From the IMG/VR virus record IMGVR_UViG_3300042317_001568, positions 141,011 through 205,010 of that record: a stretch of 64,000 bases of DNA; one strand, 5' to 3'. Under the pieces are notes generated by a model. That model was not told where the DNA came from, did no database searches, and saw only the letters and a program-made list of their open reading frames with translations. The position numbers were made by a program, and so were the translations under genes. Every line of letters starts with the position of its first letter. Position 1 is the first letter of the stretch. Below, in pieces: positions 3,510-61,086 of the stretch.

Positions 3510-4724
3510 GTGGCAGATAGTGTTTTTGAACAAGTCGATCAGTTTGTGCTGCACTCTTCCGCGCCGACAGTTCCGAAAGAGGACGTATTGTCGGCGCAAG
3601 AGCAGCTCACCTTTGTGACGTCGCTTATTGACTTCTGGAAGCAGGTACCTAAAGCCTGTCGCGCTCAGTTGCAACGCGTGTCTGAAAGTATTTCGCAGCT
3701 TGATTTCCCACTAATTGGTGGAGATTTTTACTCGGCATTGTTTTCTAGCGAGCGGATTGCCAGCGCAGAGAAGAAATACGGTTTGTCGCAGGAAGAGGTT
3801 TTTGCTGCGTTGCTGTACGCGCTGCAGCTGTTTTTGATGCGGTCTGACCCAAAGACGGCGGTTATCGATGACTTGTGGAAACTGGTTGTAATTGCGCTGG
3901 AGAAAGCGGCCAACAGAAACAAGCCGACCAACGAGCCCGAGCTGTACAACGAGCGCATGGTGTCTCGGGTATTTAAACACCGCAAACAAACCATTGCGTC
4001 GTTGGGCGCCGTCAACGCCGAGTATGTGTATTTTGAAACCCCGGTAGCCGACGACAAACATGGGCCAGAGCTCCGCGGACTGGCATTTATTTCTCGCACT
4101 GATTTGCCAAAAGCAAAGCAGCCTGCTTTCGCCAATAAGCTTTTTGTGTTGCTCGAAACCGGCGAGCACATTATTGTCGAGACAAATGCTTCAAACCTAA
4201 GCCGCCACGCCGATCCCGAAGCCTACGAGAAAATTCCGGCGAGCTTGTTGCTGCAGGCGGTAATTGCGGCGCCACTGATGGTTCGCATGGGCGTTATTAC
4301 TCGGTCTCAGGCTGATACTATCGCAGAAACGTTTGGTGAGTTTATTGCGCCTGTAACAGCAGAGATTATTGCTGACACGGCGTCCATGCTGCCGATTGAA
4401 CAGGTGTTTGTGCGGGCGCACGCCAACACGGCTTATGCCGGGCACGTTACTGGACCCAACGGAGCCGAGGTGCGGTTTCCCGCACTAAGCATCGACGACA
4501 CCAATCAGCTCGCTTTTGTGTTGCGCGCGCGGATTACGCCGAGCAGCTATTACTTGGTATCTAGTCTGGTGGCGGGCGGAGACGACTCTCCCGATGTACC
4601 CATCATGAAAAATGACTACCCAAGACAGCTGTCTCCATACGGCGTATACTTATTTCCAACGTCGCAGGATTTGTTCGTGTTGTCGGCTTTTCCGCACAAC
4701 TTTATTCTTGGCCCCGAGGGATAG
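3510..4724 (+). CDS. hypothetical protein
   Basis: 404-aa ORF starting 1 nt after the upstream stop. Confidence 0.7.
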   Translation: MADSVFEQVDQFVLHSSAPTVPKEDVLSAQEQLTFVTSLIDFWKQVPKACRAQLQRVSESISQLDFPLIGGDFYSALFSSERIASAEKKYGLSQEEVFAALLYALQLFLMRSDPKTAVIDDLWKLVVIALEKAANRNKPTNEPELYNERMVSRVFKHRKQTIASLGAVNAEYVYFETPVADDKHGPELRGLAFISRTDLPKAKQPAFANKLFVLLETGEHIIVETNASNLSRHADPEAYEKIPASLLLQAVIAAPLMVRMGVITRSQADTIAETFGEFIAPVTAEIIADTASMLPIEQVFVRAHANTAYAGHVTGPNGAEVRFPALSIDDTNQLAFVLRARITPSSYYLVSSLVAGGDDSPDVPIMKNDYPRQLSPYGVYLFPTSQDLFVLSAFPHNFILGPEG

Positions 4725-5477: not shown

Positions 5478-5548
5478 TGCCCGATGGTGTAACGGTAGCA
5501 CAAGAGATTTTGGCTCTCTTAGTCTAGGTTCGAATCCTAGTCGGGCAT
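5478..5548 (+). tRNA. trnQ: tRNA-Gln(UUG), CCA not encoded
   Basis: acceptor TGCCCGA/TCGGGCA; D arm GGTGTAACGGTAGCAC; anticodon stem AGAGA/TCTCT with loop TTTTGGC; T arm CTAGG-TTCGAAT-CCTAG. Confidence 0.95.
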
Positions 5549-6480: not shown

Positions 6481-6496
6481 AGTATTTTTTGGTTTT

Positions 6497-6638
6497 TGAT
6501 CGGCTCCTCAGTGACAGCGACTAAGGCGGCGCTTTGGTGCGCCGGTACCCAACAGCCACGTGCTTGACCTAACCCGACGGGGTGAACTACACAGCATGCC
6601 GGTGAGGTACATAGCGGGTGCAATTCCCGCCCGATCAA
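6497..6638 (+). ncRNA. tRNA-like structured RNA with enlarged core (~142 nt)
   Basis: acceptor-like stem TGATCGG(6497-6503)/CCGATCA(6631-6637) directly after T-arm-like GCGGG-TGCAATT-CCCGC (6614-6630); intergenic. Confidence 0.6.
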
Positions 6639-6689
6639 TTCGGAGGCTGACGTTAGAGTTACAAAAATTTGTTTAATAAGGACGCAGTA

Positions 6690-10267: not shown

Positions 10268-10831
10268 ATGTCAAAAGCCGAGTTGGATTTTATTCGTTTG
10301 TACGTGCAGATCACGCACAAACGCTTTGCGGCATTGCAGGCCGTGTTGAGCTTGGCGCATCCAGACAATCTGGCGCTTTTGGACATGGTGCACGCTACAG
10401 AATTGGTAGCGCACATGGAGCGGCTACAAAACGATTTTGACGGGCAGATACAGCAACTCCAGTTAAAACACAATATTCCGTCTAAACGTTTGCCGCCTGC
10501 CCCGCCAACAAATGAGCAACTGGCCGACATTGTTGTCATGTCATTTTTCAAAGTTGTCGGCGTAATGAACGCGACAAACGGTTTGATGGCAAAGACAAAA
10601 CAAAACGGGTGGTTTAGCGGTAAACCCAAAGAGTGGAATGATCTTTTCGACAAGCTGGCGACCGACTTACCCGAAAACCAAATGGATTCGGCGCTGTCGC
10701 CTTATCTAAAATCTGTCGCCAAGTTTTTTCCAAAATATTATCCCCCCGGGAACTGGTCAAAGTTGTTTCCGCCTCCGCAGCAAGAATTTTACGAAGACGA
10801 CGAATACGACGAAGAGTGGGACAACGAATAG
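10268..10831 (+). CDS. hypothetical protein with acidic tail
   Basis: ORF ending FYEDDEYDEEWDNE; start uncertain. Confidence 0.65.
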   Translation: MSKAELDFIRLYVQITHKRFAALQAVLSLAHPDNLALLDMVHATELVAHMERLQNDFDGQIQQLQLKHNIPSKRLPPAPPTNEQLADIVVMSFFKVVGVMNATNGLMAKTKQNGWFSGKPKEWNDLFDKLATDLPENQMDSALSPYLKSVAKFFPKYYPPGNWSKLFPPPQQEFYEDDEYDEEWDNE

Positions 10832-10839
10832 GAGGGCCT

Positions 10840-12021
10840 ATGCGGCCGTTGTTTGTTTTTTGTGCTGATTTGCATTTGGAAGATGGCGCTTGGACTTCTC
10901 GGATAAACATCTACGGCGACGCGTATTACAGTTTTAAGCAGATCGTAGACCACTGCATTGAGCACAAACTGCCGCTCATACTTGGCGGCGACGTGCTGGA
11001 AAAGAAAAGCAATGCGGCGCGTCCAATTGCAAAACTGTGCGCCGAGCTGACCCGCATGCAGGACGCCAAACTCCCGGTGTACTACATTCAGGGTAATCAC
11101 GAATATGATCGCTATGCGCCGTGGCTAAGCGTGCACCCGTGGCCGACGCACATGCATAACCTCACAGTGGTGTTCGACAACGTCAGCGTGCACGGCATCG
11201 ATTGGTTACCAAAGGGAGAAATTCAAAAAGCGCTCAAAGATGTTCCGGCGACTACAGCCGTACTTGTCACGCATCAGGTGTGGCAAGATTTTATGGGCAC
11301 CGTTGGGCGAACCGAATGCGATTTGTCGGAGGTGCACTACGCACACACAGTCCTCGCCGGTGACTTTCACGTTACAAAAGTAGCTGAAGGTACAAACGCG
11401 CAAGGAAAACCGATTCGCATGTTGTCTCCGGGTTCAACTGCTATGCAAGACATCGGCGAAGAACCCGAGAAGTTTTTCTTCGTTATTTGTGTTGACGAAG
11501 CGGGCAAAATTGTTTTCGCCCCGCATCGGCTGCAGACACGCAAATTTTTGAGTTATGTTGTTAAAACAGCGGAAGAGCTGGACGAACTGTGCGCCGGCAA
11601 ACTGGCAAACGCTGTTGACCGGGTACTACAGGCGGCCCGGCTTTACGTTCCGCCAGAACTAGCAAAACCACTGGTTCGGGTGAAATTCAACAAAAACCTT
11701 CCGGACGCTTATCTTCGAATCACGACGGCCGGCGCTGACATAGCGCATTTGTTTTGCGACGCCATTGCGGATCGTGACGATGAGAACAAAGACCGCCCCG
11801 CCCGCCCGCGAGATGAAACAAAAAACGACTTACTGCACGCAATCGCCGAGCTGCTTGGCGACGACACAGATGAATATCGCTTCGCGCAAGAAATACTTGC
11901 GGCTACAAATCCAAAGCGGCTCGTTGAGTCGCACCTACACGAATATGTGAAAGGGGCAGGCAATGCAGCTATTACGGCTGGAAGTTCAGAACTGGGTGCA
12001 CCACCGGAAACGGGTTTGTGA
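10840..12021 (+). CDS. sbcD: Mre11/SbcD-like metallophosphoesterase nuclease
   Basis: ADLHL, GGDV, GNHE, THQ, GDFH motifs; GGAGG SD; adjacent to the ATPase. Confidence 0.9.
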   Translation: MRPLFVFCADLHLEDGAWTSRINIYGDAYYSFKQIVDHCIEHKLPLILGGDVLEKKSNAARPIAKLCAELTRMQDAKLPVYYIQGNHEYDRYAPWLSVHPWPTHMHNLTVVFDNVSVHGIDWLPKGEIQKALKDVPATTAVLVTHQVWQDFMGTVGRTECDLSEVHYAHTVLAGDFHVTKVAEGTNAQGKPIRMLSPGSTAMQDIGEEPEKFFFVICVDEAGKIVFAPHRLQTRKFLSYVVKTAEELDELCAGKLANAVDRVLQAARLYVPPELAKPLVRVKFNKNLPDAYLRITTAGADIAHLFCDAIADRDDENKDRPARPRDETKNDLLHAIAELLGDDTDEYRFAQEILAATNPKRLVESHLHEYVKGAGNAAITAGSSELGAPPETGL

Positions 12022-14116
12022 GTTTACCCGCGGCCTTGTCGCCATCCTTGGCGAAAATGGTTCCGGCAAAAGCAGCTTGTTCGGCGCGGTCAGCTGGCTG
12101 CTTACTGGAGAAAACCCCAACTACGGCACTAAAGCCGAAAACATCTCTCAATACGCCGAAAACGACGAGCCGGCTTTTGCGCGACTTGAGTTTGAGCACA
12201 ACGGCCATATCGCCGTAGTAACTCGCTGGCTTCGGCCCGAAAAAGAAACAGCCACGATGCTCGTCGACGACGTCGAGGTGGCCAGAGGCGACAAAAGCGT
12301 CACCGCGGCTATTGAGCAGTTGCTTGGAATTGACGCCAAGTTTATTTCGCGGTTTATCATTGTTGGTCAGCTAGACATTTTTTCGTTTATTGACCAACGG
12401 CAGAGCGAAGTCGACACTTTTTTTCAGCACCTCTTCGGCACAGCAAAAGCTCAAAAATGCGCCGCTGCCGTAGGCGACGTTCTTCTGACAGCAAAGCCAC
12501 CCGAGATATTGCGCACGTCGGCGGAGCTGCAGTTGGTAAGAGACGCGTTGGCTACAAAAATAAAAGACGCTCAGGACCGCGTCGACGCTATTCCGACAAT
12601 TGACGCATTTTTGAAAATGCAGCAGGTAGATCAGGCTATTATCGAGCAATGGCGTTTACGTGAAAAACTTGGCGCAGAGCTTTCAGCACTTGAGCAGCGG
12701 GAAAAAGAGTACGCAAAAGAGCTGCAAATAGATGACGACCAGTTGACTCAGTACGCTGCTGATCTCGCCGCGCTTACCGAGTCCGCTGACACTCAAGACG
12801 CAGACTACACATCGGCGAAGGTTGCTTTAGCGCATTGGGGCAACTACAAGACTATTGCTAGCCAACGCCGACAGATTGAAACACAGCGCGCGGGAATCGC
12901 TACTGCTCGAAACGAGAATATACGCCCGGAACCAGTGACGCAGTCGGTGATTGACATGGCTGCGCAAAAGTATGCGCATTTGCATCAAGAGATCACGCGG
13001 CTGCGAAATTTTGTTAGCGCTTTTTCAAAGGCCGGCACAGCCGAATGTCCGACGTGTCATACGCCGACCGCGAACTTACAGGCGCAACTCGATGAGTCGA
13101 AAAAGTTGTTGCCGATTCTGCAAGCACAGGCCGTAGACGCGCAAGAAGCCTTGACAGAGCTGCGAAAAGCCGCAGACGGTTATGCAAAGTGGGAAAAGAC
13201 AGATCACGAATTATCGGTACGGGAACAGGCGCTTCAAACATCACTAGCGCAACTTACAGCCGTCTCCCCCCCGACAGATGACGAAACGATTCTGCAGCAA
13301 ACTGTAATAGATTACGAGGAGTTGCAGGCGGCAAAAATCGGGCTTAATGAGCTGCTTCAAAAGCTTCGTGAGCACCGCGCCCAGCTTGCCGGAGTCGCTA
13401 CCACAATCGCGGAACGGAAAAGCGAAATAGATCAATCTGTCGCGGTTATTTCTACGACTCAGGCTGACGCACATTTGGCTTCTTTACGGTTGGAAAAACT
13501 CAAAGAGCGGTGTGCTTTGCGGCAGTCACTAGAGCGCGAATTTGAAGAACTTCGTTTTTCTGATCGACAATTAGCCGAGCAGCAGGCAAATAGTCAAAAA
13601 CTGGAGGAGGAGGCAGCCCGGCTTAAAAACTGGACAGAGCAAGCGACGCGCGTTCGGGAGGCTTTCAAGAGTGCCCCGCGGCTTGTGGCTACAAGAAATC
13701 TGCAGCGGCTGGAGACAGCCATTAACGAGCTGCTGCAAATTTTTAGCGTGAACTTTTTAGTCCGCGTCGCCACCGACGGTACCCCCACGTTTGTGGCCGA
13801 ATTTTATGACGGGCGAAAACAAGTTGCGCAGCGGTTGTCCGTCGGGCAGAAAACAGTTTTGGCGCTTGCGTTTCGCGTAGCGTGTAATGCAATGTTTGCA
13901 GAAGAAATTGGTTTGCTTGCGCTCGACGAGCCTACCGCTGCTTTGGATTCTGTGCGTATTCAAGCGCTCGCTCCGGTTCTGGAAAAGCTACGAGAACTAT
14001 CGACGGCAAAAGGGTTACAATGTCTATTGGTGACGCACGCGTCTTCTTTGTCGCATTTGTTTGAGTCGACGATAGAACTCGAAGCACCGGAAACCCGCCA
14101 TGTCAAAAAATTATGA
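11963..14116 (+). CDS. sbcC: Rad50/SbcC-like SMC ATPase
   Basis: Walker A GENGSGKSS, coiled coil, zinc hook CPTC, signature LSVGQ, Walker B LALDEP, H-loop VTH. Confidence 0.92.
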   Translation: MQLLRLEVQNWVHHRKRVCEFTRGLVAILGENGSGKSSLFGAVSWLLTGENPNYGTKAENISQYAENDEPAFARLEFEHNGHIAVVTRWLRPEKETATMLVDDVEVARGDKSVTAAIEQLLGIDAKFISRFIIVGQLDIFSFIDQRQSEVDTFFQHLFGTAKAQKCAAAVGDVLLTAKPPEILRTSAELQLVRDALATKIKDAQDRVDAIPTIDAFLKMQQVDQAIIEQWRLREKLGAELSALEQREKEYAKELQIDDDQLTQYAADLAALTESADTQDADYTSAKVALAHWGNYKTIASQRRQIETQRAGIATARNENIRPEPVTQSVIDMAAQKYAHLHQEITRLRNFVSAFSKAGTAECPTCHTPTANLQAQLDESKKLLPILQAQAVDAQEALTELRKAADGYAKWEKTDHELSVREQALQTSLAQLTAVSPPTDDETILQQTVIDYEELQAAKIGLNELLQKLREHRAQLAGVATTIAERKSEIDQSVAVISTTQADAHLASLRLEKLKERCALRQSLEREFEELRFSDRQLAEQQANSQKLEEEAARLKNWTEQATRVREAFKSAPRLVATRNLQRLETAINELLQIFSVNFLVRVATDGTPTFVAEFYDGRKQVAQRLSVGQKTVLALAFRVACNAMFAEEIGLLALDEPTAALDSVRIQALAPVLEKLRELSTAKGLQCLLVTHASSLSHLFESTIELEAPETRHVKKL

Positions 14117-15044
14117 CGAGACTGTAATGCGGTTGCACACAGACCAAAACGGTATTGTGTGGTTTGCACGCGGCCTAGACGCGCCGACGTCTTCCGAAAA
14201 AAATACAGACACGTTTATGCTGACGCCGGTTTGTTCTGGCAAAAGCGCGGTATTTCGGTTAATTGGAGCTGCGCAAAACGCTGAACTAATTTGCGGGCTT
14301 TTTTTACGGTTGCGTCAAAAAGAAGTCTTATCTGTTGAGTTGGGCGGACCGAATATTTTTGACGACAATTTGCGACAACTTGACGCGCAGCAGGTTGTTA
14401 TGCGCATGAATGGTGTTCGTTTACCGGCATCCCGTGGCGGCTGGCACTCAGCAACCTACGCCGACTACAACATATACGGCTTGCTGGCGCGTTTAAACCG
14501 AAACGGTTTTATGCCGGATACGCCGGCTAAGATTCATTTTGGTTCGCACCCAATTGCAAAAATTCTTCAGTTTATTCCAACACTGTCAGAGTCAGACGCG
14601 GCGGTCTTTGCTGCTACCGTCATCGACCCGCGTTGGTTTTCTGATCGGCGCACAACTGATTGCACTAAAAACGTGTTTAACTTTTTGGGGCTTACGCCGG
14701 CGTCGCAGCGCCGCGTGAGCGATCCGACTGCAATTTTAACGCGTGTTCGTGACGTACGTTGCGCTAGAGTTTTGGCCGCGTGGAAAAGCAAAGAAATTTC
14801 TCCGGACAGCGTAGACCTGAAAAACCCGGCAAATTTTTTGTACCGTATTTGGCACGCTGCCGGCGGTGGGCCAAAGGGGGACTTGCGAGCTTCGCAGGCT
14901 TTTGTACAGTATGCGGTGTCGAACTGGCTGTCAGCGCTGGAGCAGCGCGCCGGAGTCAGGGACGGGCTATTTGCGCCTAACCTGTATTTCAAAACACCAG
15001 CCGAGCAAAAAGCTTACACGCAATACGCCGCGGCCGTTTCGTGA
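14100..15044 (+). CDS. IS110-transposase/Nop-domain-like protein, apparently lacking RuvC catalytic residues
   Basis: HPIAKILQFIPTLSESDAAVFAATVIDPRWF...VFNFLGLTP resembles the IS110 C-terminal LxxIPGIG..AA..+AEIGDxxRF..AYxGLxP pattern. Confidence 0.55.
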   Translation: MSKNYDETVMRLHTDQNGIVWFARGLDAPTSSEKNTDTFMLTPVCSGKSAVFRLIGAAQNAELICGLFLRLRQKEVLSVELGGPNIFDDNLRQLDAQQVVMRMNGVRLPASRGGWHSATYADYNIYGLLARLNRNGFMPDTPAKIHFGSHPIAKILQFIPTLSESDAAVFAATVIDPRWFSDRRTTDCTKNVFNFLGLTPASQRRVSDPTAILTRVRDVRCARVLAAWKSKEISPDSVDLKNPANFLYRIWHAAGGGPKGDLRASQAFVQYAVSNWLSALEQRAGVRDGLFAPNLYFKTPAEQKAYTQYAAAVS

Positions 15045-15047
15045 CCT

Positions 15048-15542
15048 ATGCAGGAAGTAGCAATCACTCTGCGGTTTAACCGTGTCTGTCTAGGCGCTGC
15101 CAGACGACGACGCAACGGGCAAACTATATTTTGCTTTGACCGTGATCCGGACGGCAGAGTGATGTTTATGCCCGCGGCGTGGCTGTCGTGTATGCGGTAC
15201 GCTGCCAAGCTCTACAACCGATTCCATACAGACGTAAAAAACATCGATTGGTGTCCGCTTGTAATGGGTACGCCAAAACCAGACTGGCGGCGAACAATCA
15301 TTTCAAACGCCAACAAAGAAGACACCCGGGCGCATTTTGCCGTGCATGAAGCCTTCAAGCCCGGCGACAAAATCACGTTGAGCGCTGTATTGCCGCAAGA
15401 AATTGGCGTGGAAGATTTTACCTACATGTTGACAATTGTCGGCAAATACCGCGGCTTCTCGCCGTTTAACAACAATCAAGAAAAATATGGCACATTCGAA
15501 GTCATCTCAGTCGACCCAATCGCCGGACCCGGATCGGAATAG
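15048..15542 (+). CDS. hypothetical protein, possible RAMP (Cas7/Csm3-like) fold
   Basis: N-terminal ITLRFNRVCLG; C-terminal EAFKPGDKITL...MLTIVGKYRGFSPF...YGTFEV resembles the RAMP glycine loop. Confidence 0.4.
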   Translation: MQEVAITLRFNRVCLGAARRRRNGQTIFCFDRDPDGRVMFMPAAWLSCMRYAAKLYNRFHTDVKNIDWCPLVMGTPKPDWRRTIISNANKEDTRAHFAVHEAFKPGDKITLSAVLPQEIGVEDFTYMLTIVGKYRGFSPFNNNQEKYGTFEVISVDPIAGPGSE

Positions 15543-17079
15543 GTTTGCGGGTCTGCGTGTCGTTATCCATAAAACGGGTAACGTGTTGCGGCTGATGGGC
15601 GAGAACAATACGCCCCTGCCGCCTGAACTAATTAAAGCTGTTACGCGCGGCCTGCAGTATTCGCACGTCGAGCAGCTTCACGGAAAGTCGCACCGTAACC
15701 CAATTACGGGGCAGCGGCTGTTTTTCCAGACACGGGAATACAAACTATACCGCGTCGAGAACGGCCAGATTACTTTGCTTTTCGGCTACACTGCCCGAGC
15801 GCTTAAACGCCTCCGGCGGCTCGGTTGCGAAATTGCGTTTTTTGACCTAAGCCCGGCACGTGCGCGACCAAACTGTTATGTCCCGCAATGGGAGGGTCTT
15901 GCCGGCCGCATCGAGTTCCGCGCCCGGCAGGACGAGTGTTTAAATACGATTGCCCGCGTACCTTGTGGCATCATCAAAGCAGTTACGGGCTTCGGCAAGA
16001 CGACACTGATCGGAGCTGCCGCGCTGCTGTTTCCTGAGGCGCGTATTGATGTCGTCACAAAATCTGTCGACGTCGCTGAGCGTATTGTGCGCAGTCTGCG
16101 GCGGTTCGTGCCAAAGGTCGGACTCATTGGTGACGGCTCCCGCCGCCGTGAGCGCGTCACAGTAATCACCGCCGGCAGTTTGGCGCACGCCGACGGCGAC
16201 GCGGATTTTTTGTTTGCAGACGAAGTGCATCAGTTGGCCACAATCAACTTCTCGACAACGATAGCGGATCGGTACCGCAACTCACGCAACTTCGGTTTGA
16301 GCGCCACGCCGTATGCTCGGATGGACAACGCGCACGAAGTTTTGGAGCCGTTGTTCGGCCCGATGATTTTTGAGTTGACGTATCAGCAAGCGGTCGAGCT
16401 CGGGCTCGTCGTGCCTGTTCGCGTCAAATGGCTGCCTATCAGGCTCAGTCACAATCCTGCAGAACGGTTTCAGAATCGTATAGCGAGAAAACGGTACGGC
16501 ATCTGGACAAACCATGAGCGGAACCGTATGATCGCCGAAGCCGTTCGCGAGTATCCAGAAGAGTCTCAAATTCTGATACTCGTTGAGACCATTGAGCACG
16601 CTGTTTATTTGGGGGCGCAATTACCGGAGTTTACGCTGGTGTATTCCAGCATGGATAACTATGACTGCTCTAAGTACAGAAAAATGGGTTTGCTGCCAAA
16701 AGACTACAGGCCCATCTCCGACATTCAAAAGCACAATTTCCGCGACCAGTTTGAACGTGGTGAATTACGGCGCGTAATAGCCACGGATGTGTGGTCTACG
16801 GGCGTTGACTTTGAGCAGTTGAATGTACTTGTGCGTGCCGATGATCGTGACAGCGACATTGTGGACGTTCAAGGTCCCGGTCGTGTCAGCCGTATTTACA
16901 CGGCTCCTGACGGCACATCAAAAGAGGTCGGCGAAGTAATAGACTGCATGGACGTATTCGATCCCACTTTTTACAAGAAAAGCGCTGGTCGTCGTGATAG
17001 CTACAAACTACTTGGATGGGAGCAGAATTGGAATGATGCTCAAAGAAACTGGCGCAATATCCCCAACCATGAGCCGTGA
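15436..17079 (+). CDS. superfamily 2 helicase (UvsW/XPB-like); start uncertain
   Basis: TGFGKT, DEVH, SAT, TDVWSTGVD and QGPGRVSR motifs. Confidence 0.9.
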   Translation: MSANTAASRRLTTIKKNMAHSKSSQSTQSPDPDRNRFAGLRVVIHKTGNVLRLMGENNTPLPPELIKAVTRGLQYSHVEQLHGKSHRNPITGQRLFFQTREYKLYRVENGQITLLFGYTARALKRLRRLGCEIAFFDLSPARARPNCYVPQWEGLAGRIEFRARQDECLNTIARVPCGIIKAVTGFGKTTLIGAAALLFPEARIDVVTKSVDVAERIVRSLRRFVPKVGLIGDGSRRRERVTVITAGSLAHADGDADFLFADEVHQLATINFSTTIADRYRNSRNFGLSATPYARMDNAHEVLEPLFGPMIFELTYQQAVELGLVVPVRVKWLPIRLSHNPAERFQNRIARKRYGIWTNHERNRMIAEAVREYPEESQILILVETIEHAVYLGAQLPEFTLVYSSMDNYDCSKYRKMGLLPKDYRPISDIQKHNFRDQFERGELRRVIATDVWSTGVDFEQLNVLVRADDRDSDIVDVQGPGRVSRIYTAPDGTSKEVGEVIDCMDVFDPTFYKKSAGRRDSYKLLGWEQNWNDAQRNWRNIPNHEP

Positions 17080-17794
17080 TGCTGAAATTCTAAAACCAGA
17101 CTGGCACACCCGGCTTACTGACAAACAACTGATGGCGTACATTCGCTATCAGTTTATTCGTTTAAAAGAGCACGTTATTGATCTTGATTCCCCGGCACAC
17201 ACGCACCGGCGCCCGAACTGGGACGGCGGCGAAAATAGCGCGGGTGTCACCTACAAGGCTTTGTGGCCAAAAGCCATGAACGCCATTAAGGAACGAGAAG
17301 CGCATCCCGGCGTTTGGGTGACGGCGCGGTTCTCGCCAATTGCGCTATCGTTTGATTTGTCGAACCGCATGTCAGCCCCGCCGATTAAACCGTCGTCGCT
17401 AGCCGACCACAATGCCGCGACAATTTACGCTGAATACTGCAAGCGGTTTACCGGGTCATTTACGTTTAATTTGAACATTGCGTTGAAGGTTGTGGCGTCG
17501 CGTTTGCGTGAGCTAGCGGCGCACCCAATGCCGGAAAACGCCCGGGTATTTTATGTTCTTTGTGACGAGGCGCATCTTTCAACGCCGGCATTTTTCCGGC
17601 ACGGCATGGCCTCCGCCGCCGAGTGCGATAAAGCGGCGCTCAAGTACCTGTGGCGCGCCGCAGTCGACTACGAGGCGCAGCAGCCGCTTTACGACGCCGC
17701 CTGCGCCGCGCAATCTGTTTCAGATTTTATTACTCCCGAATTGCAGCAGTATGTGATTAATATCCGCAAACATTGGATGACTTACAATGACTAA
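17069..17794 (+). CDS. hypothetical protein
   Basis: overlaps both helicase genes at its ends. Confidence 0.7.
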   Translation: MSRDAEILKPDWHTRLTDKQLMAYIRYQFIRLKEHVIDLDSPAHTHRRPNWDGGENSAGVTYKALWPKAMNAIKEREAHPGVWVTARFSPIALSFDLSNRMSAPPIKPSSLADHNAATIYAEYCKRFTGSFTFNLNIALKVVASRLRELAAHPMPENARVFYVLCDEAHLSTPAFFRHGMASAAECDKAALKYLWRAAVDYEAQQPLYDAACAAQSVSDFITPELQQYVINIRKHWMTYND

Positions 17795-19478
17795 GAATCA
17801 GTTAGAAGATGGCCCACTAAAGGCCCGTGACATCGACGTCGAGTACCCAATTACCGTTACTGACGTGCGGTTGTTGGTGAAAACGTTGCTGCGGTATCAG
17901 CAGATGCTGCAAAGCGCTATCTCTGCCGGATTGAATTTCAATCAGTTTAATGGCCCGGACGAAGCGCCTTACGGTTACGTTATGCACGCCGCCGGCGCGC
18001 TTGTTAAGGAACATAACGCCGTAACAGAGGAAATGCTGAAAGCCGAACTTCAGGCTTGGTATTCTGGCGGGGCTATGGCGATAGCGCCGCAGCAGTTTGA
18101 AGAGTTGCTTGGCACTGAAGGGAATCCCGGATTTCTGAGCGAGGCTTTTGCCGCACCCGAGACAGACAACAAGCGCGTTACCGCGGAGAAAGATTATGCG
18201 CAAAAGCTGCTGTACAAGTTTCTAAAAGCGCGCATGCTGACAGCAGACTTGTCGGAAATGCTTCAGGCGTCGTCGGCTGACACGTCGCCGCAACGGTTTG
18301 AAGAGCTGCTCGGTAAGTCGTATCGCAAAGCGCAGTCAATCCGATTCATCGGCACGGAACTTGACGATGAAAATGATTTCATGCCAGAGTTCGGCTCAGA
18401 AACGAATTACGCGCCCGTAGTCGCCGAGCCAACCGGTATACCGTGGATTGACCAGTACATCGGCGGATTTTGCGCCGGAGACGTAATCGGTCTTCTTGGC
18501 CCTACTGGCGGCGGCAAGAGCAACATGATGATCTCGGCTGCGGTAAGAATGGCGCAATATTATGCGGCAAACAACCTGAACAAGTTGTCTGTCTACGTGT
18601 GCTATGAAGACGGCAATTACCGCATGAAACCGTTGTTCTGGTCCGCCGCGACGCGCATTAGCCGCGAGACCTTTGCAAACGCTGATTTCAACTGGGCAAA
18701 TATGTCTACAAGCGAGATGCCCAACGACGCTGACCGCCGTCTCCCCGAAAATCAAAATGGTGAGTTTATTCTCGGCGAGCGGGAGCGATATATTGCCGCG
18801 CAGTCTTGGATGAAGAAGCACTTCAAGTTTTTGGACTTTTCTTACAACGTTGCTACTGGCGGCCGCGGCCTTGGCGGGCTGCAGGAAATCGTATCAGTGG
18901 TTGAGCAGATTTGTGAGAAGCGTGGAATGTCGTTGGGTTTTATCGCCATTGATTATGCGGGCATACTTATTGAGCGTTACCTTGCAGCGACGGGGCGTTT
19001 AAAATCTACAGGCCCTGACGGCGTATATCTTCCGCTAAAAACGTTTGGTGACGAAGTGCGGTATAGTCTGTCTGCTCCGTACGGGGCTGTAGCTATGGTC
19101 GCGCATCAGATTGCTGGCGCCGCCGCAAACGCAAAGCCCTTTTATCGGTATCTTACGCACTGGGACGTACAGCACTGCAAGTCGTTCGCTGAGAATATGC
19201 AGGCTTGCATTTGCATAAATTCTGCGGACCCTGACACGCAAGCGCGGCTTATTAATTACTCAAAAATTCGATACGGCGCGCCCGGGATGCAGCACGGCAT
19301 TATCAAGATCAAGAGCGAGTACTGCAGTATTGACCTTGTGTCTGACTTTTATCAGGTCGATGAGTTTTCGAAGAAGATCGTTCCTAAAAATGAGCTTTCT
19401 TCAGCCGCCGGTCGACCAGCACGAACCCGGCCGTCTTCTGGAATGGTTCCCGGAGATAACTTTAGCAACATGTTGTAG
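17787..19478 (+). CDS. dnaB: DnaB-like (SF4) replicative helicase
   Basis: GPTGGGKS Walker A, IAIDY, AHQ motifs; directly upstream of the primase. Confidence 0.82.
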   Translation: MTKNQLEDGPLKARDIDVEYPITVTDVRLLVKTLLRYQQMLQSAISAGLNFNQFNGPDEAPYGYVMHAAGALVKEHNAVTEEMLKAELQAWYSGGAMAIAPQQFEELLGTEGNPGFLSEAFAAPETDNKRVTAEKDYAQKLLYKFLKARMLTADLSEMLQASSADTSPQRFEELLGKSYRKAQSIRFIGTELDDENDFMPEFGSETNYAPVVAEPTGIPWIDQYIGGFCAGDVIGLLGPTGGGKSNMMISAAVRMAQYYAANNLNKLSVYVCYEDGNYRMKPLFWSAATRISRETFANADFNWANMSTSEMPNDADRRLPENQNGEFILGERERYIAAQSWMKKHFKFLDFSYNVATGGRGLGGLQEIVSVVEQICEKRGMSLGFIAIDYAGILIERYLAATGRLKSTGPDGVYLPLKTFGDEVRYSLSAPYGAVAMVAHQIAGAAANAKPFYRYLTHWDVQHCKSFAENMQACICINSADPDTQARLINYSKIRYGAPGMQHGIIKIKSEYCSIDLVSDFYQVDEFSKKIVPKNELSSAAGRPARTRPSSGMVPGDNFSNML

Positions 19479-19486
19479 TGAGAGGA

Positions 19487-20563
19487 ATGGGCGCAACAGT
19501 GGACGCGGGAATAAAACCCCTGAACCCAACACTTTACGCGCTGCTGGAACACAAATTCAGCGGGAGCGTAAAGATCGCAAATCCCGGCGTGGCGGCAGCC
19601 ATCGAGCGTTATCGTGATCCAGTGCACCCCGGCAGGTACGTAACCCGTAGTTCACACTGGGGCGAGTACTACTGCGTATGCTGCCCGTTTTGCAACGACG
19701 TTGGACACAAGCTCTGGATCAATCATCGCTACGGTGCAGACGTCGACCCCGAAACGGGACGACGCTCGGACACGTTTTTGGCCGTGTGCTATAAAAACAA
19801 TTGTATCCGTACGCGGTATCAGCAGTTTGAAGATTTAGTTTTTGGTCCCGGCAAAAAACTACCAGTGCGTATGGGTATCGCCACCGGCATCAAACCCGAA
19901 AACGCTGAATCTATTTCTCCGCCGGGCGAGATTGTTTCCTTGGTTGATCTTCCGGACTATCATCCGGCAAACGAGTATCTACGGTCCCGAAATTTTGATC
20001 CCGCTGTTCTCGCCGAAAAATTCGGCGTCGGCGTTTGCGTAAACCCCGTGCCGGCTTACGGCATCATGCGCGGCCGAATCTACATTCCTGTGTATTCCAG
20101 CGGGCAGCTTGTTGGTTGGCAGGGACGGATCGTGACACCCCCCGACGGCAAACCGAAGTATTACACGCAAGGCAGCAAAAGCCGCGCGCTTTACAACTAT
20201 GCGCAAGCGGCTCGTCAGCCGTACGTCGTTGTTGTCGAAGGCGTGCCGAGCGTGTGGCGCATTGGCGACCCTGCCGTCGCCATTTTTGGAAAAACGTTGT
20301 CGCAATGGCAGCAAAACACGATCGGCACGGCGTGGACTGGAAAACCTGTTTTTGTCGTGATAGATTTCGGCGAAGACGAGGGGCGTGCGCTTGAGCAGAT
20401 TGCCATGCAGCTGTACCGGTATCCCATCCAGTTGGTTCCAGTGCAGATGCCAGACGCCCGCGACCCGGCTGATTATTCTTTGCCGGATTTTTACGAGTTG
20501 CTCCACGAGGCGGCAGCAGACATAGGCGTAGATTCATCAGTATTAAACACGAGAAACCAATGA
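19487..20563 (+). CDS. dnaG: DNA primase (zinc finger plus TOPRIM)
   Basis: CPFC..C zinc domain, GWQGRI, VVVEG, VIDFGED. Confidence 0.85.
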   Translation: MGATVDAGIKPLNPTLYALLEHKFSGSVKIANPGVAAAIERYRDPVHPGRYVTRSSHWGEYYCVCCPFCNDVGHKLWINHRYGADVDPETGRRSDTFLAVCYKNNCIRTRYQQFEDLVFGPGKKLPVRMGIATGIKPENAESISPPGEIVSLVDLPDYHPANEYLRSRNFDPAVLAEKFGVGVCVNPVPAYGIMRGRIYIPVYSSGQLVGWQGRIVTPPDGKPKYYTQGSKSRALYNYAQAARQPYVVVVEGVPSVWRIGDPAVAIFGKTLSQWQQNTIGTAWTGKPVFVVIDFGEDEGRALEQIAMQLYRYPIQLVPVQMPDARDPADYSLPDFYELLHEAAADIGVDSSVLNTRNQ

Positions 20564-23500
20564 GTGTAGTGTCTTTAAATCAGCGTCATACACGCTCTCT
20601 TTATGACCCTAAAAGCGCTAAGCTAACAGCAGCGCTTTTTCCGTTTTTGCCGCTCGACGCTCCGGGCATGCCGTCCGCAGGCCCGAACTTTATCGCGCAT
20701 GCCAATATCTTGGGCGACACGATCGATCCGGCAAAAACGAAAAAACAAATCCCGATCGGCGAGAAGCTGACAAACTTGTACAGAGACGCGCTGTACAACC
20801 CGCAGTTCTTTCTGCCTGTCGCTCACAAGAATGAGTTGACGGCGGTGCCGTTTCTTCCGGGACACATTCTCGGTCAAGTCGCGGACGAAAAGTTTAAATC
20901 GCTTCACGCGACTGATGACGAGTTTGGCCCTCGCCCCGCTCGCGTCATGATCGTAGGAAAGTCCCCCGGGCAGACAGAGATTCAATACCGCAACTCTTTT
21001 GGCGGTTCTGGCATGCGGCCTATGCAGCACGCTATGCAGGAGTGCGGCTTTTTGCCGGACGAGTATTTGTCGTGGTACGTAACCTTCGCCTGCAAATTTA
21101 TGTCGCCGGACGCAGAGCTGACGGCTCTCCCGGCCGCGTGGCTGAAGGACTGCGCGCTGCTGCTAGAGCAAGAAATACGGCTTGTACAGCCAGACTATAT
21201 TCTCTGCCTTGGCGCGGAGGCTACAAAGGCCGTGCTGCAGACAACCGGGAGCGTCACGAATCTTCTTGGCCGCGCTATAACGCGTAAGTCAAAAGATGCG
21301 GAAGGAAACGACCGCGAGATTCTTGTTGTCCCTGCCGTCAACCCGGGTTTTGTAGCGCGTAAGCCTGACGCTTACGAAGACTTTGTCGGCCAGATTCAGC
21401 GGTTTTACGACTTGGTTCACAACAAGCAGTCTGTTGAAGAAACAGTCGACCACGCCGAGATTTACACGGAAGAGACTTTACGTGAAATGGTCGATGAGAT
21501 GATTGCCGACACGACGCTGAACGCGAACATCATCGCCATCGACTGCGAGTGGCACGGCGAGTTCCCCACGGAAGATGGCGCTTACTTGCGCACCATTCAG
21601 GTCTCTAACAAGGACAAGTGGGCGCGCACGATTGTCTTGCGGCATCAAGGCGGTGGAATTGCTTTTCAGCCAAATCTCGACGTAATTCGCGAACAGTTGA
21701 ATCGGCTACTGAAGAGCACGCCTGATCGGCATGTCCGAGTTGGCGGGCATTTCTTTCGTGCTGACTTGCCGTGGCTTGTCCACTTCGGCGTCGATGTACG
21801 CGAGGAGTACGGTCCGGTTGATAACTCAGACGATAGAACTCGCGGGGGTTGGGACACGAGTCTGATGTATCACGCTGTAAACGAGACGGCGCGGTATGGG
21901 TTAGACGCGTGCTCCATGCGGTTTACTTCTGCGCCTATTTACTGGGAAGAATTGGACAACTGGAACAAGAAGCGAAAAAAGAATGGCGACGCAGACGGCG
22001 GTTACGGTAATTGCCCGGGCCACATTTTGCATCCGTACGCCTCGTACGACGCCGACGTCACGCGACGGATTATGTTGCGTTTTTACGGCACCAACGGCCG
22101 AGACGGCTTGTTAGCCAGCGACGCAAACGGCGTTGACTGCTGGTTACCGTACTGGACCGCGCATATCGCGTCGCTGGCGTTTCTGGAAATGGAAATGACC
22201 GGTCTCGTAATTGACCGCGACCGCGCTGACGAGCTGACAACCGTGTTTATGAATACGCAAGACCAGCTTTTGGACGAAATTAGGGCGGAACTGAACTGGC
22301 CTGAATTCAATCCAAAATCGCAGCCGCAACTATCTGTCGCGTTGTTCGGCGCCGACTTTGGCGCGCGGTATGTCAACCCACCCGAGCCGCCGGCAGACGC
22401 TTCGTTATTGAGCCTGACGCCAGTCAAGACAACCGGCAAACGCCCGACCTTGTGGGCGGAACTAGGCATGCGCGGCCTTGACGCAGCTACTGCGGTGCCC
22501 AGCACCGATAAAGAAAGTCTGGGTATTCTTGGGCATCAAAACGCCACAGCTGCCAAGATTCGCGATTACAAGTTTGTGAGTCAGGTCCTGCAGTCTGTTT
22601 TACGTAAACCAGCAAAAGACGACACCGGAGAATACGAAGCCGATGAAAACGGAAATTTCGTCTATGAGAAGGGGCTGGTGGGCTGCGTTCATTCCGACGG
22701 CCGTGTTCGCACACACTTTTTTCAGACGAAAGAAACCGGCCGCGCGTCAAGCTCTCGACCGCCTTTGCAAAACCTCAGCTCCCGCCGCGAGGACGACTAT
22801 CGACGTATCCTCGGCGCATCTTATCACCACCCAGTCCGGTCAGTCCTGCGGGTGCCAGAAGGGTACGTCGGGCTTGAAACGGACCTCACTGGTGCGGAAC
22901 TGGCGGTCCTCGCGTGGTTGTCGCAAGATAAAAACATGATCGAACATGTTCGGCGTAATCTTCTCCCAGAGAGTCACACCGACCATTACGACATCCACTC
23001 GCGACAGGCGTGCAAGGCGTTTAATCTCCACAACATCGAACCTACAAAAACTGGCCTCGTAAAGGCCGGGAAAAAGGGTTTGCGTGTTGCCGCTAAAAAC
23101 GTGAATTTCGGTATCCCATATGGCCGCGGGGCAGAAGCTATCGCGCGGCAATGCAAAGAAGAGGGTGTCGAGGTTACGCCAGCCGAGTGTCAGGCGATGA
23201 TCGACGCGTACTTTGACTCGTATCCCGGCACAGCTGATTTTTTAGCGGAGTGCCGCGCACGGTCTCAAAACCCCGGTTGGCTCGTTGGCCCATACGGCCG
23301 CTTGCGGCGCTTTTCATCTGCCGAGTTCAATCGTTCTTCTAACAGCAAGGGTACAAAAGCATACGCCGTTGTTGGAGAACAGGAACGGCAAGCGCAGAAC
23401 TTCCCGATTCAAGGCGGCGTGGCTGATGCGGTGTCAATGGCATTGGCGAACTTTTACGAGTATCGCACAAACCACTCTGACATTGATTACAAGATCGCGC

Positions 23501-23754
23501 TCCAGATTCACGACGCGATTGTTTTGTTGGTTCCCATTGAACACTCTGAACGCGTGTATAAGGAGGTTATTCCTAAATGCATGATTGATGATGTGCCGTT
23601 TTGGCCTCGCCGATTAGATGGCAGTTCCATCCTTGTTCCCGAGCCGTATCGGTTCGGCTGCTCCCGAGACGTCTTTGTGCACTGGGGCGAGAACATAACC
23701 CCCGAGCAAATCAGGGCTTACGGCATGGACTGGCTTTTTGATTGCAAGGACTAG
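20560..23754 (+). CDS. polA: family A DNA polymerase with N-terminal UDG family 4-like domain and 3'-5' exonuclease
   Basis: VMIVGKSPG..E and PDYILCLG (UDG-like); IDCEW and YDAD (exo); TDLTGAEL, AKNVNFGIPYG, IHDA (polymerase motifs A, B, C). Confidence 0.92.
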   Translation: MSVVSLNQRHTRSLYDPKSAKLTAALFPFLPLDAPGMPSAGPNFIAHANILGDTIDPAKTKKQIPIGEKLTNLYRDALYNPQFFLPVAHKNELTAVPFLPGHILGQVADEKFKSLHATDDEFGPRPARVMIVGKSPGQTEIQYRNSFGGSGMRPMQHAMQECGFLPDEYLSWYVTFACKFMSPDAELTALPAAWLKDCALLLEQEIRLVQPDYILCLGAEATKAVLQTTGSVTNLLGRAITRKSKDAEGNDREILVVPAVNPGFVARKPDAYEDFVGQIQRFYDLVHNKQSVEETVDHAEIYTEETLREMVDEMIADTTLNANIIAIDCEWHGEFPTEDGAYLRTIQVSNKDKWARTIVLRHQGGGIAFQPNLDVIREQLNRLLKSTPDRHVRVGGHFFRADLPWLVHFGVDVREEYGPVDNSDDRTRGGWDTSLMYHAVNETARYGLDACSMRFTSAPIYWEELDNWNKKRKKNGDADGGYGNCPGHILHPYASYDADVTRRIMLRFYGTNGRDGLLASDANGVDCWLPYWTAHIASLAFLEMEMTGLVIDRDRADELTTVFMNTQDQLLDEIRAELNWPEFNPKSQPQLSVALFGADFGARYVNPPEPPADASLLSLTPVKTTGKRPTLWAELGMRGLDAATAVPSTDKESLGILGHQNATAAKIRDYKFVSQVLQSVLRKPAKDDTGEYEADENGNFVYEKGLVGCVHSDGRVRTHFFQTKETGRASSSRPPLQNLSSRREDDYRRILGASYHHPVRSVLRVPEGYVGLETDLTGAELAVLAWLSQDKNMIEHVRRNLLPESHTDHYDIHSRQACKAFNLHNIEPTKTGLVKAGKKGLRVAAKNVNFGIPYGRGAEAIARQCKEEGVEVTPAECQAMIDAYFDSYPGTADFLAECRARSQNPGWLVGPYGRLRRFSSAEFNRSSNSKGTKAYAVVGEQERQAQNFPIQGGVADAVSMALANFYEYRTNHSDIDYKIALQIHDAIVLLVPIEHSERVYKEVIPKCMIDDVPFWPRRLDGSSILVPEPYRFGCSRDVFVHWGENITPEQIRAYGMDWLFDCKD

Positions 23755-42700: not shown

Positions 42701-44389
<1,689 letters not shown>

Positions 44390-44406
44390 TGGGGTGTTGT
44401 TGAGCC

Positions 44407-47400
44407 ATGACTCTCGCACCTCCAAAAATTCTTCAGATACGTATATTAAGCGTAACCGAGTTGCCGGATCGGCTATCCGGAAACTATTGGTCTAGCAGCG
44501 CTTATCGGTGGACAGCCACGTTAGCGGTTAATCCGCAAACTCACGGCGACCCGGCGTCTTCAACAGGCTTTTACTACACAGCCCGCGACATCAAAATCGG
44601 CGACTATGTCGTAACCAGCGGCCGTGGTTTAATTCTTAAAGTAATTGCTGTAAATGCCGGTTCGGTTACAGACACGTCTATCCAGTGCACGCTTGAAGAC
44701 GAAAATCAATACAACGCGTTTCTAAGCGAAAACTCAGACGGTGACGGTTTAATTCCGTCAAACAATACAGAAGGCGTACTGTTTGAAACAAAAAACGGCT
44801 GGCCTATTTTGCATCCTTTACCGGACGCGTTGGCTGGTACGTTGCCGCCCTATTTTTCAGCTGACATTATTTCTCGGTTTATGTACACCCGGCCCGCCGA
44901 CTCTGGCGGCAGTGGGTCTGCAGGCCCTACAGGTGCTGCTGGTCCTACTGGTGTTGCAGGCCCAACCGGCGTTGCTGGAGCTACTGGTCCAACTGGCGCT
45001 GCTGGGCTAAACGGAGCTACTGGTCCAACCGGTGTTGCTGGAGCTACTGGTGTTGCTGGTCCAACTGGCGTTGCTGGGTTAGATGGCGCTACTGGTCCAA
45101 CTGGGGCTGCGGGCGCTACTGGCGTCGCAGGCCCGACTGGCGTTGCTGGAGCTACCGGTGTTGCTGGGTTAGATGGCGCTACTGGTCCAACTGGGGCTGC
45201 TGGCCCAACTGGCGCTGCGGGCGCTACTGGCGCCGCAGGCCCGACTGGCGTTGCTGGAGCTACCGGTGTTGCTGGGTTAGACGGAGCGACGGGCCCAACC
45301 GGCGCTGCTGGGCTAAACGGAGCTACTGGTCCAACCGGTGTTGCTGGGCTAGATGGCGCTACTGGTCCAACTGGGGCTGCTGGTCCAACTGGCGTCGCGG
45401 GTGTTGTTGGGGCTACGGGCGTTATTGGCCCAATTGGCCCCGCTGGCGTCACCGGTCCAACTGGTCCTGTTGGAGCTACTGGTCCAACTGGGGCTGCTGG
45501 GTCGCAAGGTATAGACGGAGCGACGGGCCCAACCGGCGCTGCTGGGCTAAACGGAGCTACTGGTCCAACCGGTGTTGCTGGAGCTACTGGTGTTGCTGGT
45601 GTTGCTGGATTAGACGGAGCTACTGGTCCAACCGGTGTTGCTGGTCCAACTGGTGTTACAGGCCCTACAGGTCCTGCTGGTCAGCAAGGTGTTGCTGGTC
45701 CTACTGGTGTTACAGGTCCTACAGGTCCTGCTGGTGTTGCTGGGCCGCAAGGTATAGACGGAGCTACTGGACCTACAGGCCCCGCCGGGGTTGCTGGTCA
45801 GCAAGGTGTTGCTGGTCCAACTGGTGTCGCCGGGCCGCAAGGTATAGACGGAGCTACTGGACCTACAGGTCCTGCTGGTCAGCAAGGTGTTGCTGGTCCA
45901 ACTGGTGTCGCCGGGCCACAAGGTATAGACGGAGCTACTGGACCTACAGGTCCTGCTGGTCAGCAAGGTGTTGCTGGTCCAACCGGTGTTGCTGGCGCTA
46001 CAGGTGTTACAGGTCCTACAGGGCCTGCTGGTGTTGCCGGTGTTGCTGGTCCAACCGGTGTTGCTGGCGCTACGGGTGTTACAGGTCCTACAGGGCCTGC
46101 TGGTCAGCAAGGTGTTGCTGGTCCAACTGGTGTTGCTGGGCCGCAAGGTATAAATGGCGCTACCGGGCCTACAGGGCCTGCTGGTCAGCAAGGTGTTGCT
46201 GGACCAACTGGTGTTGCTGGCGCTACAGGTGTTACAGGTCCGCAAGGCTCGTCTTTAAATATTCGCGGGCAGCTTGTAGAGTGGCCGCCGTCGTGGCTGC
46301 CCGAGTTTGGCGATATGTGGGTGGCCGTCGATCCCGTGCCGCTTGACACGCCAGTTTATTTGAGCGTGCAACCCGGCGACGGCATCGCGTGGGTCGAGTC
46401 GGGCGATGGCGGAGATTGGTTAAATGTCGGGCCTTTCAGAGGACCTATTGGTCCGCAAGGTTTATTGGGCCCTAGCGGCCCAACGGGCGCACAGGGTATT
46501 CAAGGCATTCGCGGCGCGACCGGCGTACAGGGTCCGTCTGGCCTCGTCGGCGCAACAGGCCCGCAAGGACCGGCGGCAAGCAATATTGTGCTCAGCGTTA
46601 ACTCTCAGACAGGGGTGGTTGTGTTGCAGTCTGACGACATCACGCTCGACACAGAATTTACGGTTTTAGCAGTCGACCAAGGCGACCTTGCAAATAATAC
46701 AGTCATAGCAGCCGGTACGTCGTTGACGACGATTATCCGGCGCATGCTTCAAAAGCGCGTTCCGGCGACGTACTTAACGCCGACGCTCGTTATTGGTAGT
46801 ACGACCGCCACGGCCACAATTGAATACGGCTCTACTATAAATACGACGTTGTCATTGACGTGGACAAAAAGGGACGGCGGCGACCCAACACAGTTTAGAT
46901 ACCGGCAAAACAATCAAACTATAAACACAATTTCAGGGGCCACGGCCGCCGATTTTACGGTCCCGACATTTAATTTAACCAGCACAGCGACATTCAACGC
47001 TGTTGCGGACTACGCCGCGGGACCAGCAAAACCAGACAACTTTGGCGACGCTACGTTGCCGTCTTTGCCGGCAAGTACTGCTTCGTCTGGCAACGTGGTC
47101 CTAACGCCGGCGCATAAACGGTATTATGGTTGCACAGGCGCAGACACGCTAGACAACGATCTTGTGCTAGGGCTGCCGAATAGCGACTTACCAGCAAACA
47201 ACGCCGTTTCGCCGCCGATCGGTTCCGGATCGGACTTTACAAATTCGCGTAGCATTGCTAGAAAATTTAATCCAGATGGGCAGTACATTTACTTTGCGTG
47301 GCCTAACTCGTTAGAGGGCAGCACCGCCCCGGTCTTCACCGTAGGCGGATTATCGACTAGCGGCTGGGTAAAAACGACGGTACAGTTACGAAACGAACAA

Positions 47401-47496
47401 ATAACAGCGAAATTATCAATTGCTGCGACTACCTACGCCGTGTACCGTAGTCCAAACAAAATTAACGGCACCGATGTTAATGTTCAGGTGACGTGA
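44407..47496 (+). CDS. collagen-like virion fibre protein
   Basis: long uninterrupted Gly-X-Y tract plus globular N- and C-terminal domains. Confidence 0.85.
44923..46245 (+). repeat. coding Gly-X-Y tandem repeats
   Basis: 9-nt periodicity with higher-order blocks such as [27 protein letters not shown]. Confidence 0.9.

Positions 47497-58950: not shown

Positions 58951-61086
<2,136 letters not shown>

Follow-up and report, generated by a model that had tools for sequence, protein, structure and literature searches.

A putatively exapted, catalytically degenerate TasR-like protein in the replication/recombination operon of uncultured phages

A RuvC-like domain followed by a Nop domain is the common architecture of IS110 recombinases, Tas proteins and Nop5 (Faure et al., 2025, PMC12045711; PMC11213020), and the settings known so far for this RuvC-Nop superfamily are mobile recombinases (IS110), array-guided effectors (TIGR-Tas) and scaffolds of small nucleolar ribonucleoproteins (Nop5). 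In TasR, a coiled coil gives rise to a dimer that reads two spacers, and the exchange D11A yields the inactive variant dTasR (PMC12045711). Nop5 combines its Nop domain with a dead RuvC-like N-domain that serves as a scaffold (PMC12045711; PMC11213020). A preprint by Xu et al. (10.64898/2026.09.09.750476) has now described an arrayless, compact branch of TasR that lacks the coiled coil and resides in dense viral genomes, and its authors leave open an alternative source of guide RNA for these proteins. Here, we analyze a 64-kb stretch of viral DNA (hereafter the window), comprising positions 141,011-205,010 of the 205,010-bp IMG/VR contig 3300042317_001568 (IMGVR_UViG_3300042317_001568), and in particular the protein encoded by an open reading frame (ORF) at window positions 14100-15044 on the plus strand, which we call X314. 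With slightly more confidence than doubt, we conclude that X314 is an exapted, vertically inherited and catalytically degenerate TasR-like nucleic-acid binder that forms part of the phage replication/recombination machinery. Its family probably corresponds to the arrayless compact branch of Xu et al., a match based on description only. The text of this preprint makes no mention of SbcCD, a helicase, replication, RAMP proteins or Cas7, nor of a whole-genome search, and our literature search retrieved no further paper on arrayless TasR-like proteins in replication operons.

The gene and the two domains predicted for its product are located as follows:

14100..15044, plus strand: X314, a TasR/IS110-like protein with degenerate RuvC-like and Nop-like domains, core gene of the family
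14100..14435, plus strand: predicted N-terminal RNase H/RuvC-like domain of X314 (aa 1-112), without a conserved acidic catalytic set
14457..15041, plus strand: predicted C-terminal helical domain of X314 (aa 120-314), similar to the Nop/Tas C-terminal domain

The ORF is real, starts with ATG and encodes a basic protein of 314 aa (pI 9.46; pI of the C-terminal domain, 9.66; family median, 8.8). Its structure was modeled with AlphaFold2 on the basis of a 52-sequence alignment (pLDDT 90, pTM 0.88). In this model, residues 1-112 adopt the strand-strand-strand-helix-strand-helix-strand topology of the RNase H/RuvC-like fold, whereas residues 120-314 are helical. A Foldseek search against the PDB placed recombinase chains of IS621 and ISCro4 among the ten best matches, with full-length alignments and probabilities of 0.90-0.99 but template-modeling (TM) scores of only ~0.35, and TasR in twelfth position. 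Across all searches, the top structural matches were TasR, TasH, IS621 and ISCro4, with TasR matching best over both domains; chains of Nop5 were absent from the 50 best rows, and a search of the viral structure library BFVD returned no match. The Foldseek results thus indicate that X314 possesses the RuvC-plus-Nop architecture, with TasR as its nearest solved relative. Together, they support the prediction that X314 has a two-domain fold composed of a RuvC-like N-terminal domain, as in IS110 recombinases and TasR, and a Nop/Tnp-like C-terminal domain of the type found in TasR. The Nop/IS110-like RNA-binding fold that an initial annotation of the DNA had proposed, and for which it had suggested a Foldseek comparison, is thus borne out at the level of the predicted model.

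A predicted difference from TasR concerns the region that links the two domains. The secondary-structure (DSSP) string of the model contains helices of only 7, 15, 9 and 6 residues between strand 5 and the conserved FIPTLS motif, and the longest helix of the entire protein measures 24 residues, so that a long coiled coil is not predicted. In this respect, X314 also differs from Nop5 and Nop56/58, which otherwise, with their dead RuvC-like N-domain scaffold and their Nop domain, are functionally the closest analogs of a superfamily protein without catalytic activity. Consistent with the structural comparison, PF01798 did not match X314, and neither a methyltransferase/fibrillarin nor L7Ae was recognized among the ~40 window proteins scanned. 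Compared with the bridge-RNA recombinases of the IS110 family (IS621, PDB 8wt6 and 8wt9; ISCro4, PDB 9t56), X314 has a spacer that is ~40 residues shorter before the IPxxx motif and lacks a bridge RNA.

At the sequence level, these relationships are barely visible. X314 had no significant match in Pfam, PHROGs, NCBIfam or PADLOC, and searches of the PDB sequences with the single sequence and three profiles yielded nothing significant, leaving no detectable sequence similarity to TasR (PDB 9mty). For the X314 of the window, neither PF01548 nor PF02371 reached the gathering score, and a tblastn search of 50,697 deposited phage genomes was negative. The family nevertheless is large: grouping at 90% identity gives 242 clusters, and grouping at 50% identity gives 1026 (E<=1e-3), including 587 with E<=1e-30. 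The representatives listed, 150 in number, have lengths of 270-353 aa and, in all but three cases, match over nearly their full length. Among 149 representatives with no more than 50% identity to one another, on which all conservation counts below are based, PF02371, the IS110 C-terminal domain, was the sole Pfam family with matches in multiple members (three, with a best E of 0.028). An alignment of the family profile with IS4321 and an IS4321-like profile in hhalign was not significant (probability 0.1), with a shallow X314 profile whose homolog search had produced only relatives with at least 70% identity. This insignificant alignment paired FIPTLS..DPRW..GLTP with SIPCVG..GDGKQ..GLVP of IS4321. 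The initial claim that the C-terminal half of X314 resembles the IS110 C-terminal domain is therefore clear in the predicted structure, whereas in sequence the likeness is weak and statistically undemonstrable. In a more generic explanation, X314 would be a YqgF plus helix-hairpin-helix nucleic-acid binder of the Tex/Spt6 kind whose likeness to TasR and IS110 reflects merely an old shared architecture. We consider this explanation improbable.

The RuvC-like fold appears to have been retained in X314 without its acidic active site. We assigned active-site equivalences by topology and alignment ranges rather than by superposition of coordinates. By alignment range (model position 8 corresponding to chain position 6), D11 of TasR maps to residues 13-15 at the end of strand 1, where X314 proteins have H, V or T, and D or A, respectively (position 13: H98/T17/Y11; position 14: V59/T43; position 15: D70/A41/S8/G6). 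Position 62 lies at the start of helix 2, where the glutamate of RuvC-family structures is expected, and it is similarly variable (A30/E27/P21/R14/other). The DEDD tetrad of IS110 proteins is, by the same equivalences, not conserved in the family. The X314 protein of the window itself carries D15 and E62, but the variability at these positions suggests that they are not maintained by selection; the initial remark that an obvious DEDD set is missing thus applies to the family rather than to each of its members. A similar situation is found in the C-terminal domain, which contains the motifs FIPTLS (158-163), DPRW (176-179), GLTP (197-200) and GDLRASQ (260-266). Its GLTP motif aligns with GLTP/GLVP of IS110 proteins, and the position equivalent to the catalytic Ser241 of IS621 (GLTPRRYES), five residues after the proline (position 205), is occupied by A34/R19/G16/S10. 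The nearby S207 is kept in 119 of 128 members of the close subfamily and in 28 of the 149 representatives.

Other positions are strongly conserved. Those that are at least 85% identical include W21, R53, G56, N60, P84, G113-G-W-H116, D122, Y126, H150-P, F158, D176-P-R-W, P186, G197, W228, P243, F246, R249, L262, W276, F291, F297 and E302, and R220 and S265 show 77-85% conservation. Judging from the model, X314 keeps a Nop/Tas-like domain with a strongly conserved polar surface (N60, H116, D122, Y126, H150, D176-P-R-W, R220, R249, S265 and E302). This pattern lends some weight to an alternative in which X314 would act as a structure-specific nuclease or Holliday-junction resolvase, its remodeled site being made up of N60, H116, D122 and Y126, four residues that are 85-95% conserved. 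Such an enzyme would supply a resolvase or flap activity that the replication module otherwise seems to lack, given that no recognizable resolvase was found among the window proteins scanned; the N-domain has structural likeness to the RuvC/RuvX/poxvirus-resolvase fold, and the gene adjoins SbcCD and lies near a RecA-like gene. However, the first two canonical metal positions, at the end of strand 1 and the start of helix 2, are mostly A, S, G or P, clustering of the conserved residues in space is not demonstrable without coordinates, and the best matches over the whole protein are RNA-guided proteins instead of resolvases. We therefore regard a nuclease or resolvase as distinctly unlikely, and favor a TasR-like binder whose catalytic site has degenerated.

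The genomic setting of X314 is that of a resident gene. Its neighbors in the window, all encoded on the plus strand, are the following:

10816..12021, plus strand: SbcD/Mre11-like phosphoesterase (Pfam Metallophos, PHROG 100), syntenic in the loci that reach far enough upstream
11963..14116, plus strand: SbcC/Rad50-like ATPase (SMC_N, AAA_23, PHROG 77)
15048..15542, plus strand: g164, a compact protein of 164 aa with a predicted Cas7/Csm3-like RAMP fold, 3 nt 3' of X314
15436..17079, plus strand: superfamily 2 (SF2) helicase (ResIII and Helicase_C; Pfam, PHROG 16), start codon uncertain
16994..23754, plus strand: rest of the collinear replication block, encoding a 266-aa protein of unknown function, a DnaB-like helicase, a primase and a fusion of a uracil-DNA glycosylase (UDG)-superfamily domain with PolA

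Upstream of X314, a metallophosphoesterase and an SMC-like ABC ATPase form a pair of the SbcCD/Mre11-Rad50 type. The sbcC-like ORF ends at 14116 and overlaps the start of X314 by 17 nt, and the X314 stop codon (15042-15044) is separated by 3 nt from the next ATG at 15048. These junctions, as well as the resulting lack of space for a flanking non-coding RNA, had been noted in the initial annotation, and our measurements agree with it: there is no non-coding space on either side of the gene. The window as a whole is densely packed on one strand, with only six gaps of more than 80 nt, and contains a single copy of X314.

Synteny was assessed in 52 IMG/VR loci with an X314 homolog and in three divergent clades from the search for representatives. 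Wherever the contig reaches, the 52 loci show the gene order SbcD, SbcC, X314, g164, SF2 helicase, ~260-aa unknown, DnaB-like helicase, primase and UDG-PolA, even at X314 identities of 23-33%, and the divergent clades have the same arrangement, with the RAMP gene as a variable element. At the junction examined in 51 loci, sbcC and X314 overlap in 38 cases, lie 2-18 nt apart in 12 and are separated by 180 nt in the remaining one. In all loci of sufficient extent, the SF2 helicase comes after X314 or g164. X314 diverges at approximately the same rate as SbcC. Within a set of 185,579 prokaryotic genomes, one per species, the family was matched only once, on a 13-kb contig of a metagenome-assembled genome. 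X314 is thus a vertically inherited core gene in the replication/recombination operon of a large clade of uncultured phages with genomes of ~200 kb. The fixed position and single copy rule out an ordinary mobile IS110 element, so that this candidate was rejected on the grounds of synteny. Weak PF02371 matches in three representatives and the high Foldseek ranks of IS621 and ISCro4 are what an ordinary or decaying IS110 insertion that had landed in the operon could invoke in its favor, but the conserved position down to 23% identity, the SbcC-like divergence, the absence of flanks, the lack of a conserved DEDD set or catalytic serine and the near-exclusive occurrence in phages leave it a negligible probability. 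The earlier suggestion that X314 is domesticated rather than mobile, and the proposal to inspect sbcCD synteny in related phages, have accordingly held up well. Its coupling to Mre11/Rad50 is a different matter. All relatives keep the gene order of the whole module from SbcD to PolA, so that the position of X314 next to SbcC carries no more specificity than its proximity to the helicase and is not in itself proof of a particular link with Mre11/Rad50.

Several further features of these phages deserve mention. Many contigs are 198-206 kb long and have differing end points; with their shared gene order, contigs of ~205 kb with different ends fit a circularly permuted genome of ~205 kb. Three of them (L064, L065 and L066; 205,010, 206,100 and 205,038 bp) are near-identical and end at different points, which fits headful packaging. 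The plus-strand early/replication block begins at a divergent junction beside the gene for the large terminase subunit. The UDG-superfamily domain is fused to the N-terminus of a family A DNA polymerase (20560-23754, plus strand, 1064 aa), a fusion kept in all related loci, and among the matches listed, the PolA of this phage shares no more than ~26% identity with any deposited phage. A tRNA-Gln(UUG) gene is located at 5478-5548 (plus strand), and relatives have tRNA-Gln and tRNA-Met genes similarly placed upstream of the SbcD block.

Given its resemblance to TasR, X314 could alternatively function as an RNA-guided Tas effector, with guides that are encoded far away, reside as stem-loop tigRNAs in coding sequence or derive from phage or host transcripts. 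It would then bind specific DNA sequences, such as an origin, competitor DNA or host DNA, possibly together with the Cas7-like protein and the helicase. Apart from the structural match over both domains, this possibility draws on the findings of Xu et al. (10.64898/2026.09.09.750476) that TasR with a dead RuvC domain, a state also found in natural TasR clades, and TasA act as RNA-guided repressors and that tigRNAs occur at flexible positions, including the interior of coding sequences, as well as on the question of an alternative guide source that these authors leave open. It also gains from the presence of a second guide-RNA-binding fold of the Cas7/Csm3 type in g164. We therefore searched for dual-repeat, TIGR-like arrays, as the initial annotation had recommended, using Tandem Repeats Finder (TRF), repeat finding and a scan for periodic k-mers, which had to recur in at least 4 copies at regular intervals of 26-60 or 26-80 nt. 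No such array was detected in the window, in ~2.3 Mb of related DNA (X314 loci, 1.14 Mb; other related loci, 1.17 Mb) or in ~142 kb (69%) of the 205-kb genome from which the window derives, and the only repeats recovered were collagen-like or low-complexity coding repeats. In the window, all strong tandem repeats stem from the long collagen-like Gly-X-Y stretches of three large proteins encoded at 42743-47496 and 58996-61086 (plus strand). A scan of third codon positions likewise revealed no island of synonymous constraint in X314 or the 3' end of sbcC, with the overlap between g164 and the helicase gene as the sole island.

Two RNA elements were considered as candidate partners. The first, proposed in the initial annotation at 6497-6638, was rejected as a conserved partner. 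It corresponds to a sporadic tRNA-like element of ~160 nt at 6494-6660 (plus strand) that has a T-arm and acceptor-like ends, a non-canonical middle and a minimum free energy (MFE) z-score of -1.97, and that was neither called by ARAGORN nor assigned to an Rfam family. It is 98% identical to positions 4074-4240 of locus L037 (L037:4074-4240), from a phage whose proteins are only 43-70% identical, with unrelated flanks on either side; it is absent near X314 in other loci, and an exact 27-mer from it occurs in only three IMG/VR contigs. Matches to its covariance model with E<0.01 coincide with the ARAGORN tRNA-Met of locus L010 and resemble ordinary tRNA genes. Judging from these comparisons, the element looks sporadic or horizontally moved. 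The second, outside the window, is a structured, gene-free stretch of 662 nt (L152:3969-4630, corresponding to ~69,782-70,443 of the contig) with 56% GC and an MFE z-score of -2.96 relative to shuffled sequences. It ends in a terminator-like hairpin and lies in a variable part of the genome; internal repeats are absent, no Rfam family matches it, and its occurrence was limited to contigs of the same phage. We therefore treat it as a lead rather than a partner, although its structure is a point in favor of an RNA-guided X314. Against such a function stand the lack of a periodic array, the sporadic occurrence of both candidate RNAs, which are not conserved with X314, the absence of a synonymous-constraint island in X314 and the sbcC end, and the lack of a predicted long coiled coil, which in TasR makes the two-spacer-reading dimer. 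On this basis, we judge a working RNA-guided effector unlikely. Compared with TasR, which forms a stand-alone cassette, X314 thus has no TIGR array beside its gene or in the part of the genome scanned and is instead a core gene of a collinear operon.

The gene following X314 raises the interest of the locus, and its similarity to Cas7 is a new observation. g164 had no family match and, specifically, no RAMP match in Pfam, NCBIfam or PADLOC. Its predicted structure, by contrast, has an RRM-like RAMP fold and a glycine-rich loop, seen as the C-terminal motif GKYRGFSPF..YGTFEV, and retrieved Cas7/Csm3-type proteins in Foldseek (E 7.5e-6, probability 1.00, TM score 0.6-0.67, 91 matches with E<=1e-3). 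With ~164 aa, it is smaller than the Cas7, Csm3 and Cmr4 backbone subunits (~200-300 aa), and it lies in a phage replication operon; the window and the related loci contain no CRISPR array, and no other cas genes surround it. g164 is more conserved than X314 (62-72% versus 43-53% identity) and is found in 48 of the 52 loci as well as in divergent clade 2 (hhalign E 4.8e-44). It is absent from clades 1 and 3, in which the helicase directly follows X314. As far as the models indicate, two folds of guide-RNA-binding proteins thus appear side by side in a replication operon. In some relatives (L017, 10940-12668; L021, 10940-12018; L033; L052), an additional 0.25-1.7 kb of DNA is located between the two genes, so that the pair need not be contiguous; the ORFs in the L017 and L021 insertions have no recognizable domains.

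The last ~35 codons of g164 (~105 nt, 15436-15542) are shared with the SF2 helicase ORF. In this overlap, third-position identity, which averages ~0.5, reaches 0.6-0.75 when read in the frame of g164 and 0.8-0.96 in that of the helicase, a pattern that suggests real dual coding or a regulatory element. In four loci (L003, L004, L043 and L044; ~11,420-12,350), the helicase match begins ~1 kb further downstream of g164, suggesting that an additional gene, an intron or an intein has been inserted where the helicase gene begins.

We propose that X314 belongs to the RuvC-Nop superfamily (IS110, TIGR-Tas, Nop5) as an exapted protein without mobility, which is structurally closest to TasR and has kept the RuvC-like fold while losing its acidic active site. 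During phage replication/recombination, it would act as a nucleic-acid-binding subunit that neither cuts nor recombines DNA, and the structure it recognizes could be branched DNA, an RNA:DNA hybrid or a short RNA. In doing so, it would work with its neighbors, the SbcCD nuclease, the RAMP protein and the helicase, and may have a scaffolding role similar to that of the dead RuvC-like domain of Nop5 or that of dTasR. Hypothetically, X314 could in addition be guided by RNA and coupled to Mre11/Rad50.

Several considerations speak against this proposal. The whole structural case rests on a predicted model, and the profile and sequence searches failed to establish homology with IS110 or Tas. The array scan left contig positions 1-63,015 (31% of the genome) uncovered, and stem-loop tigRNAs without repeats would escape scans of this kind altogether. 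The invariant polar residues N60, H116, D122, Y126, H150, D176 and R178 could form a non-canonical active site, in which case the designation of X314 as non-catalytic would be wrong. Finally, the prediction of a complex between X314 and g164 gave an ipSAE of 0.00; this prediction was run without controls and is evidence neither for nor against an interaction.

X314, g164, the SF2 helicase and SbcCD could also constitute an undescribed nucleic-acid-guided machine, in which a non-array RNA, such as a transcript, a primer or an R-loop strand, would direct end processing, origin or recombination events. We consider its existence a long shot, marginally less probable than a nuclease function of X314. 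If real, however, such a machine would represent parts of two RNA-guided lineages that were recruited for the maintenance of a virus genome, instead of defense or transposition.

Collectively, our findings place the RuvC-Nop superfamily in a fourth setting, that of a vertically inherited core gene for viral replication/recombination with ~1,000 sequence clusters. The question of the arrayless TasR proteins raised by the 2026 preprint thereby gains a genomic and functional frame, with SbcCD, the RAMP protein and the SF2 helicase as testable partners. The locus also hints that two folds of guide-RNA-binding proteins may have been put to new use in phage DNA metabolism. Should RNA take part, X314 may exemplify a new route of guide sourcing; if not, it would be a case in which RNA guidance has been lost within the superfamily.

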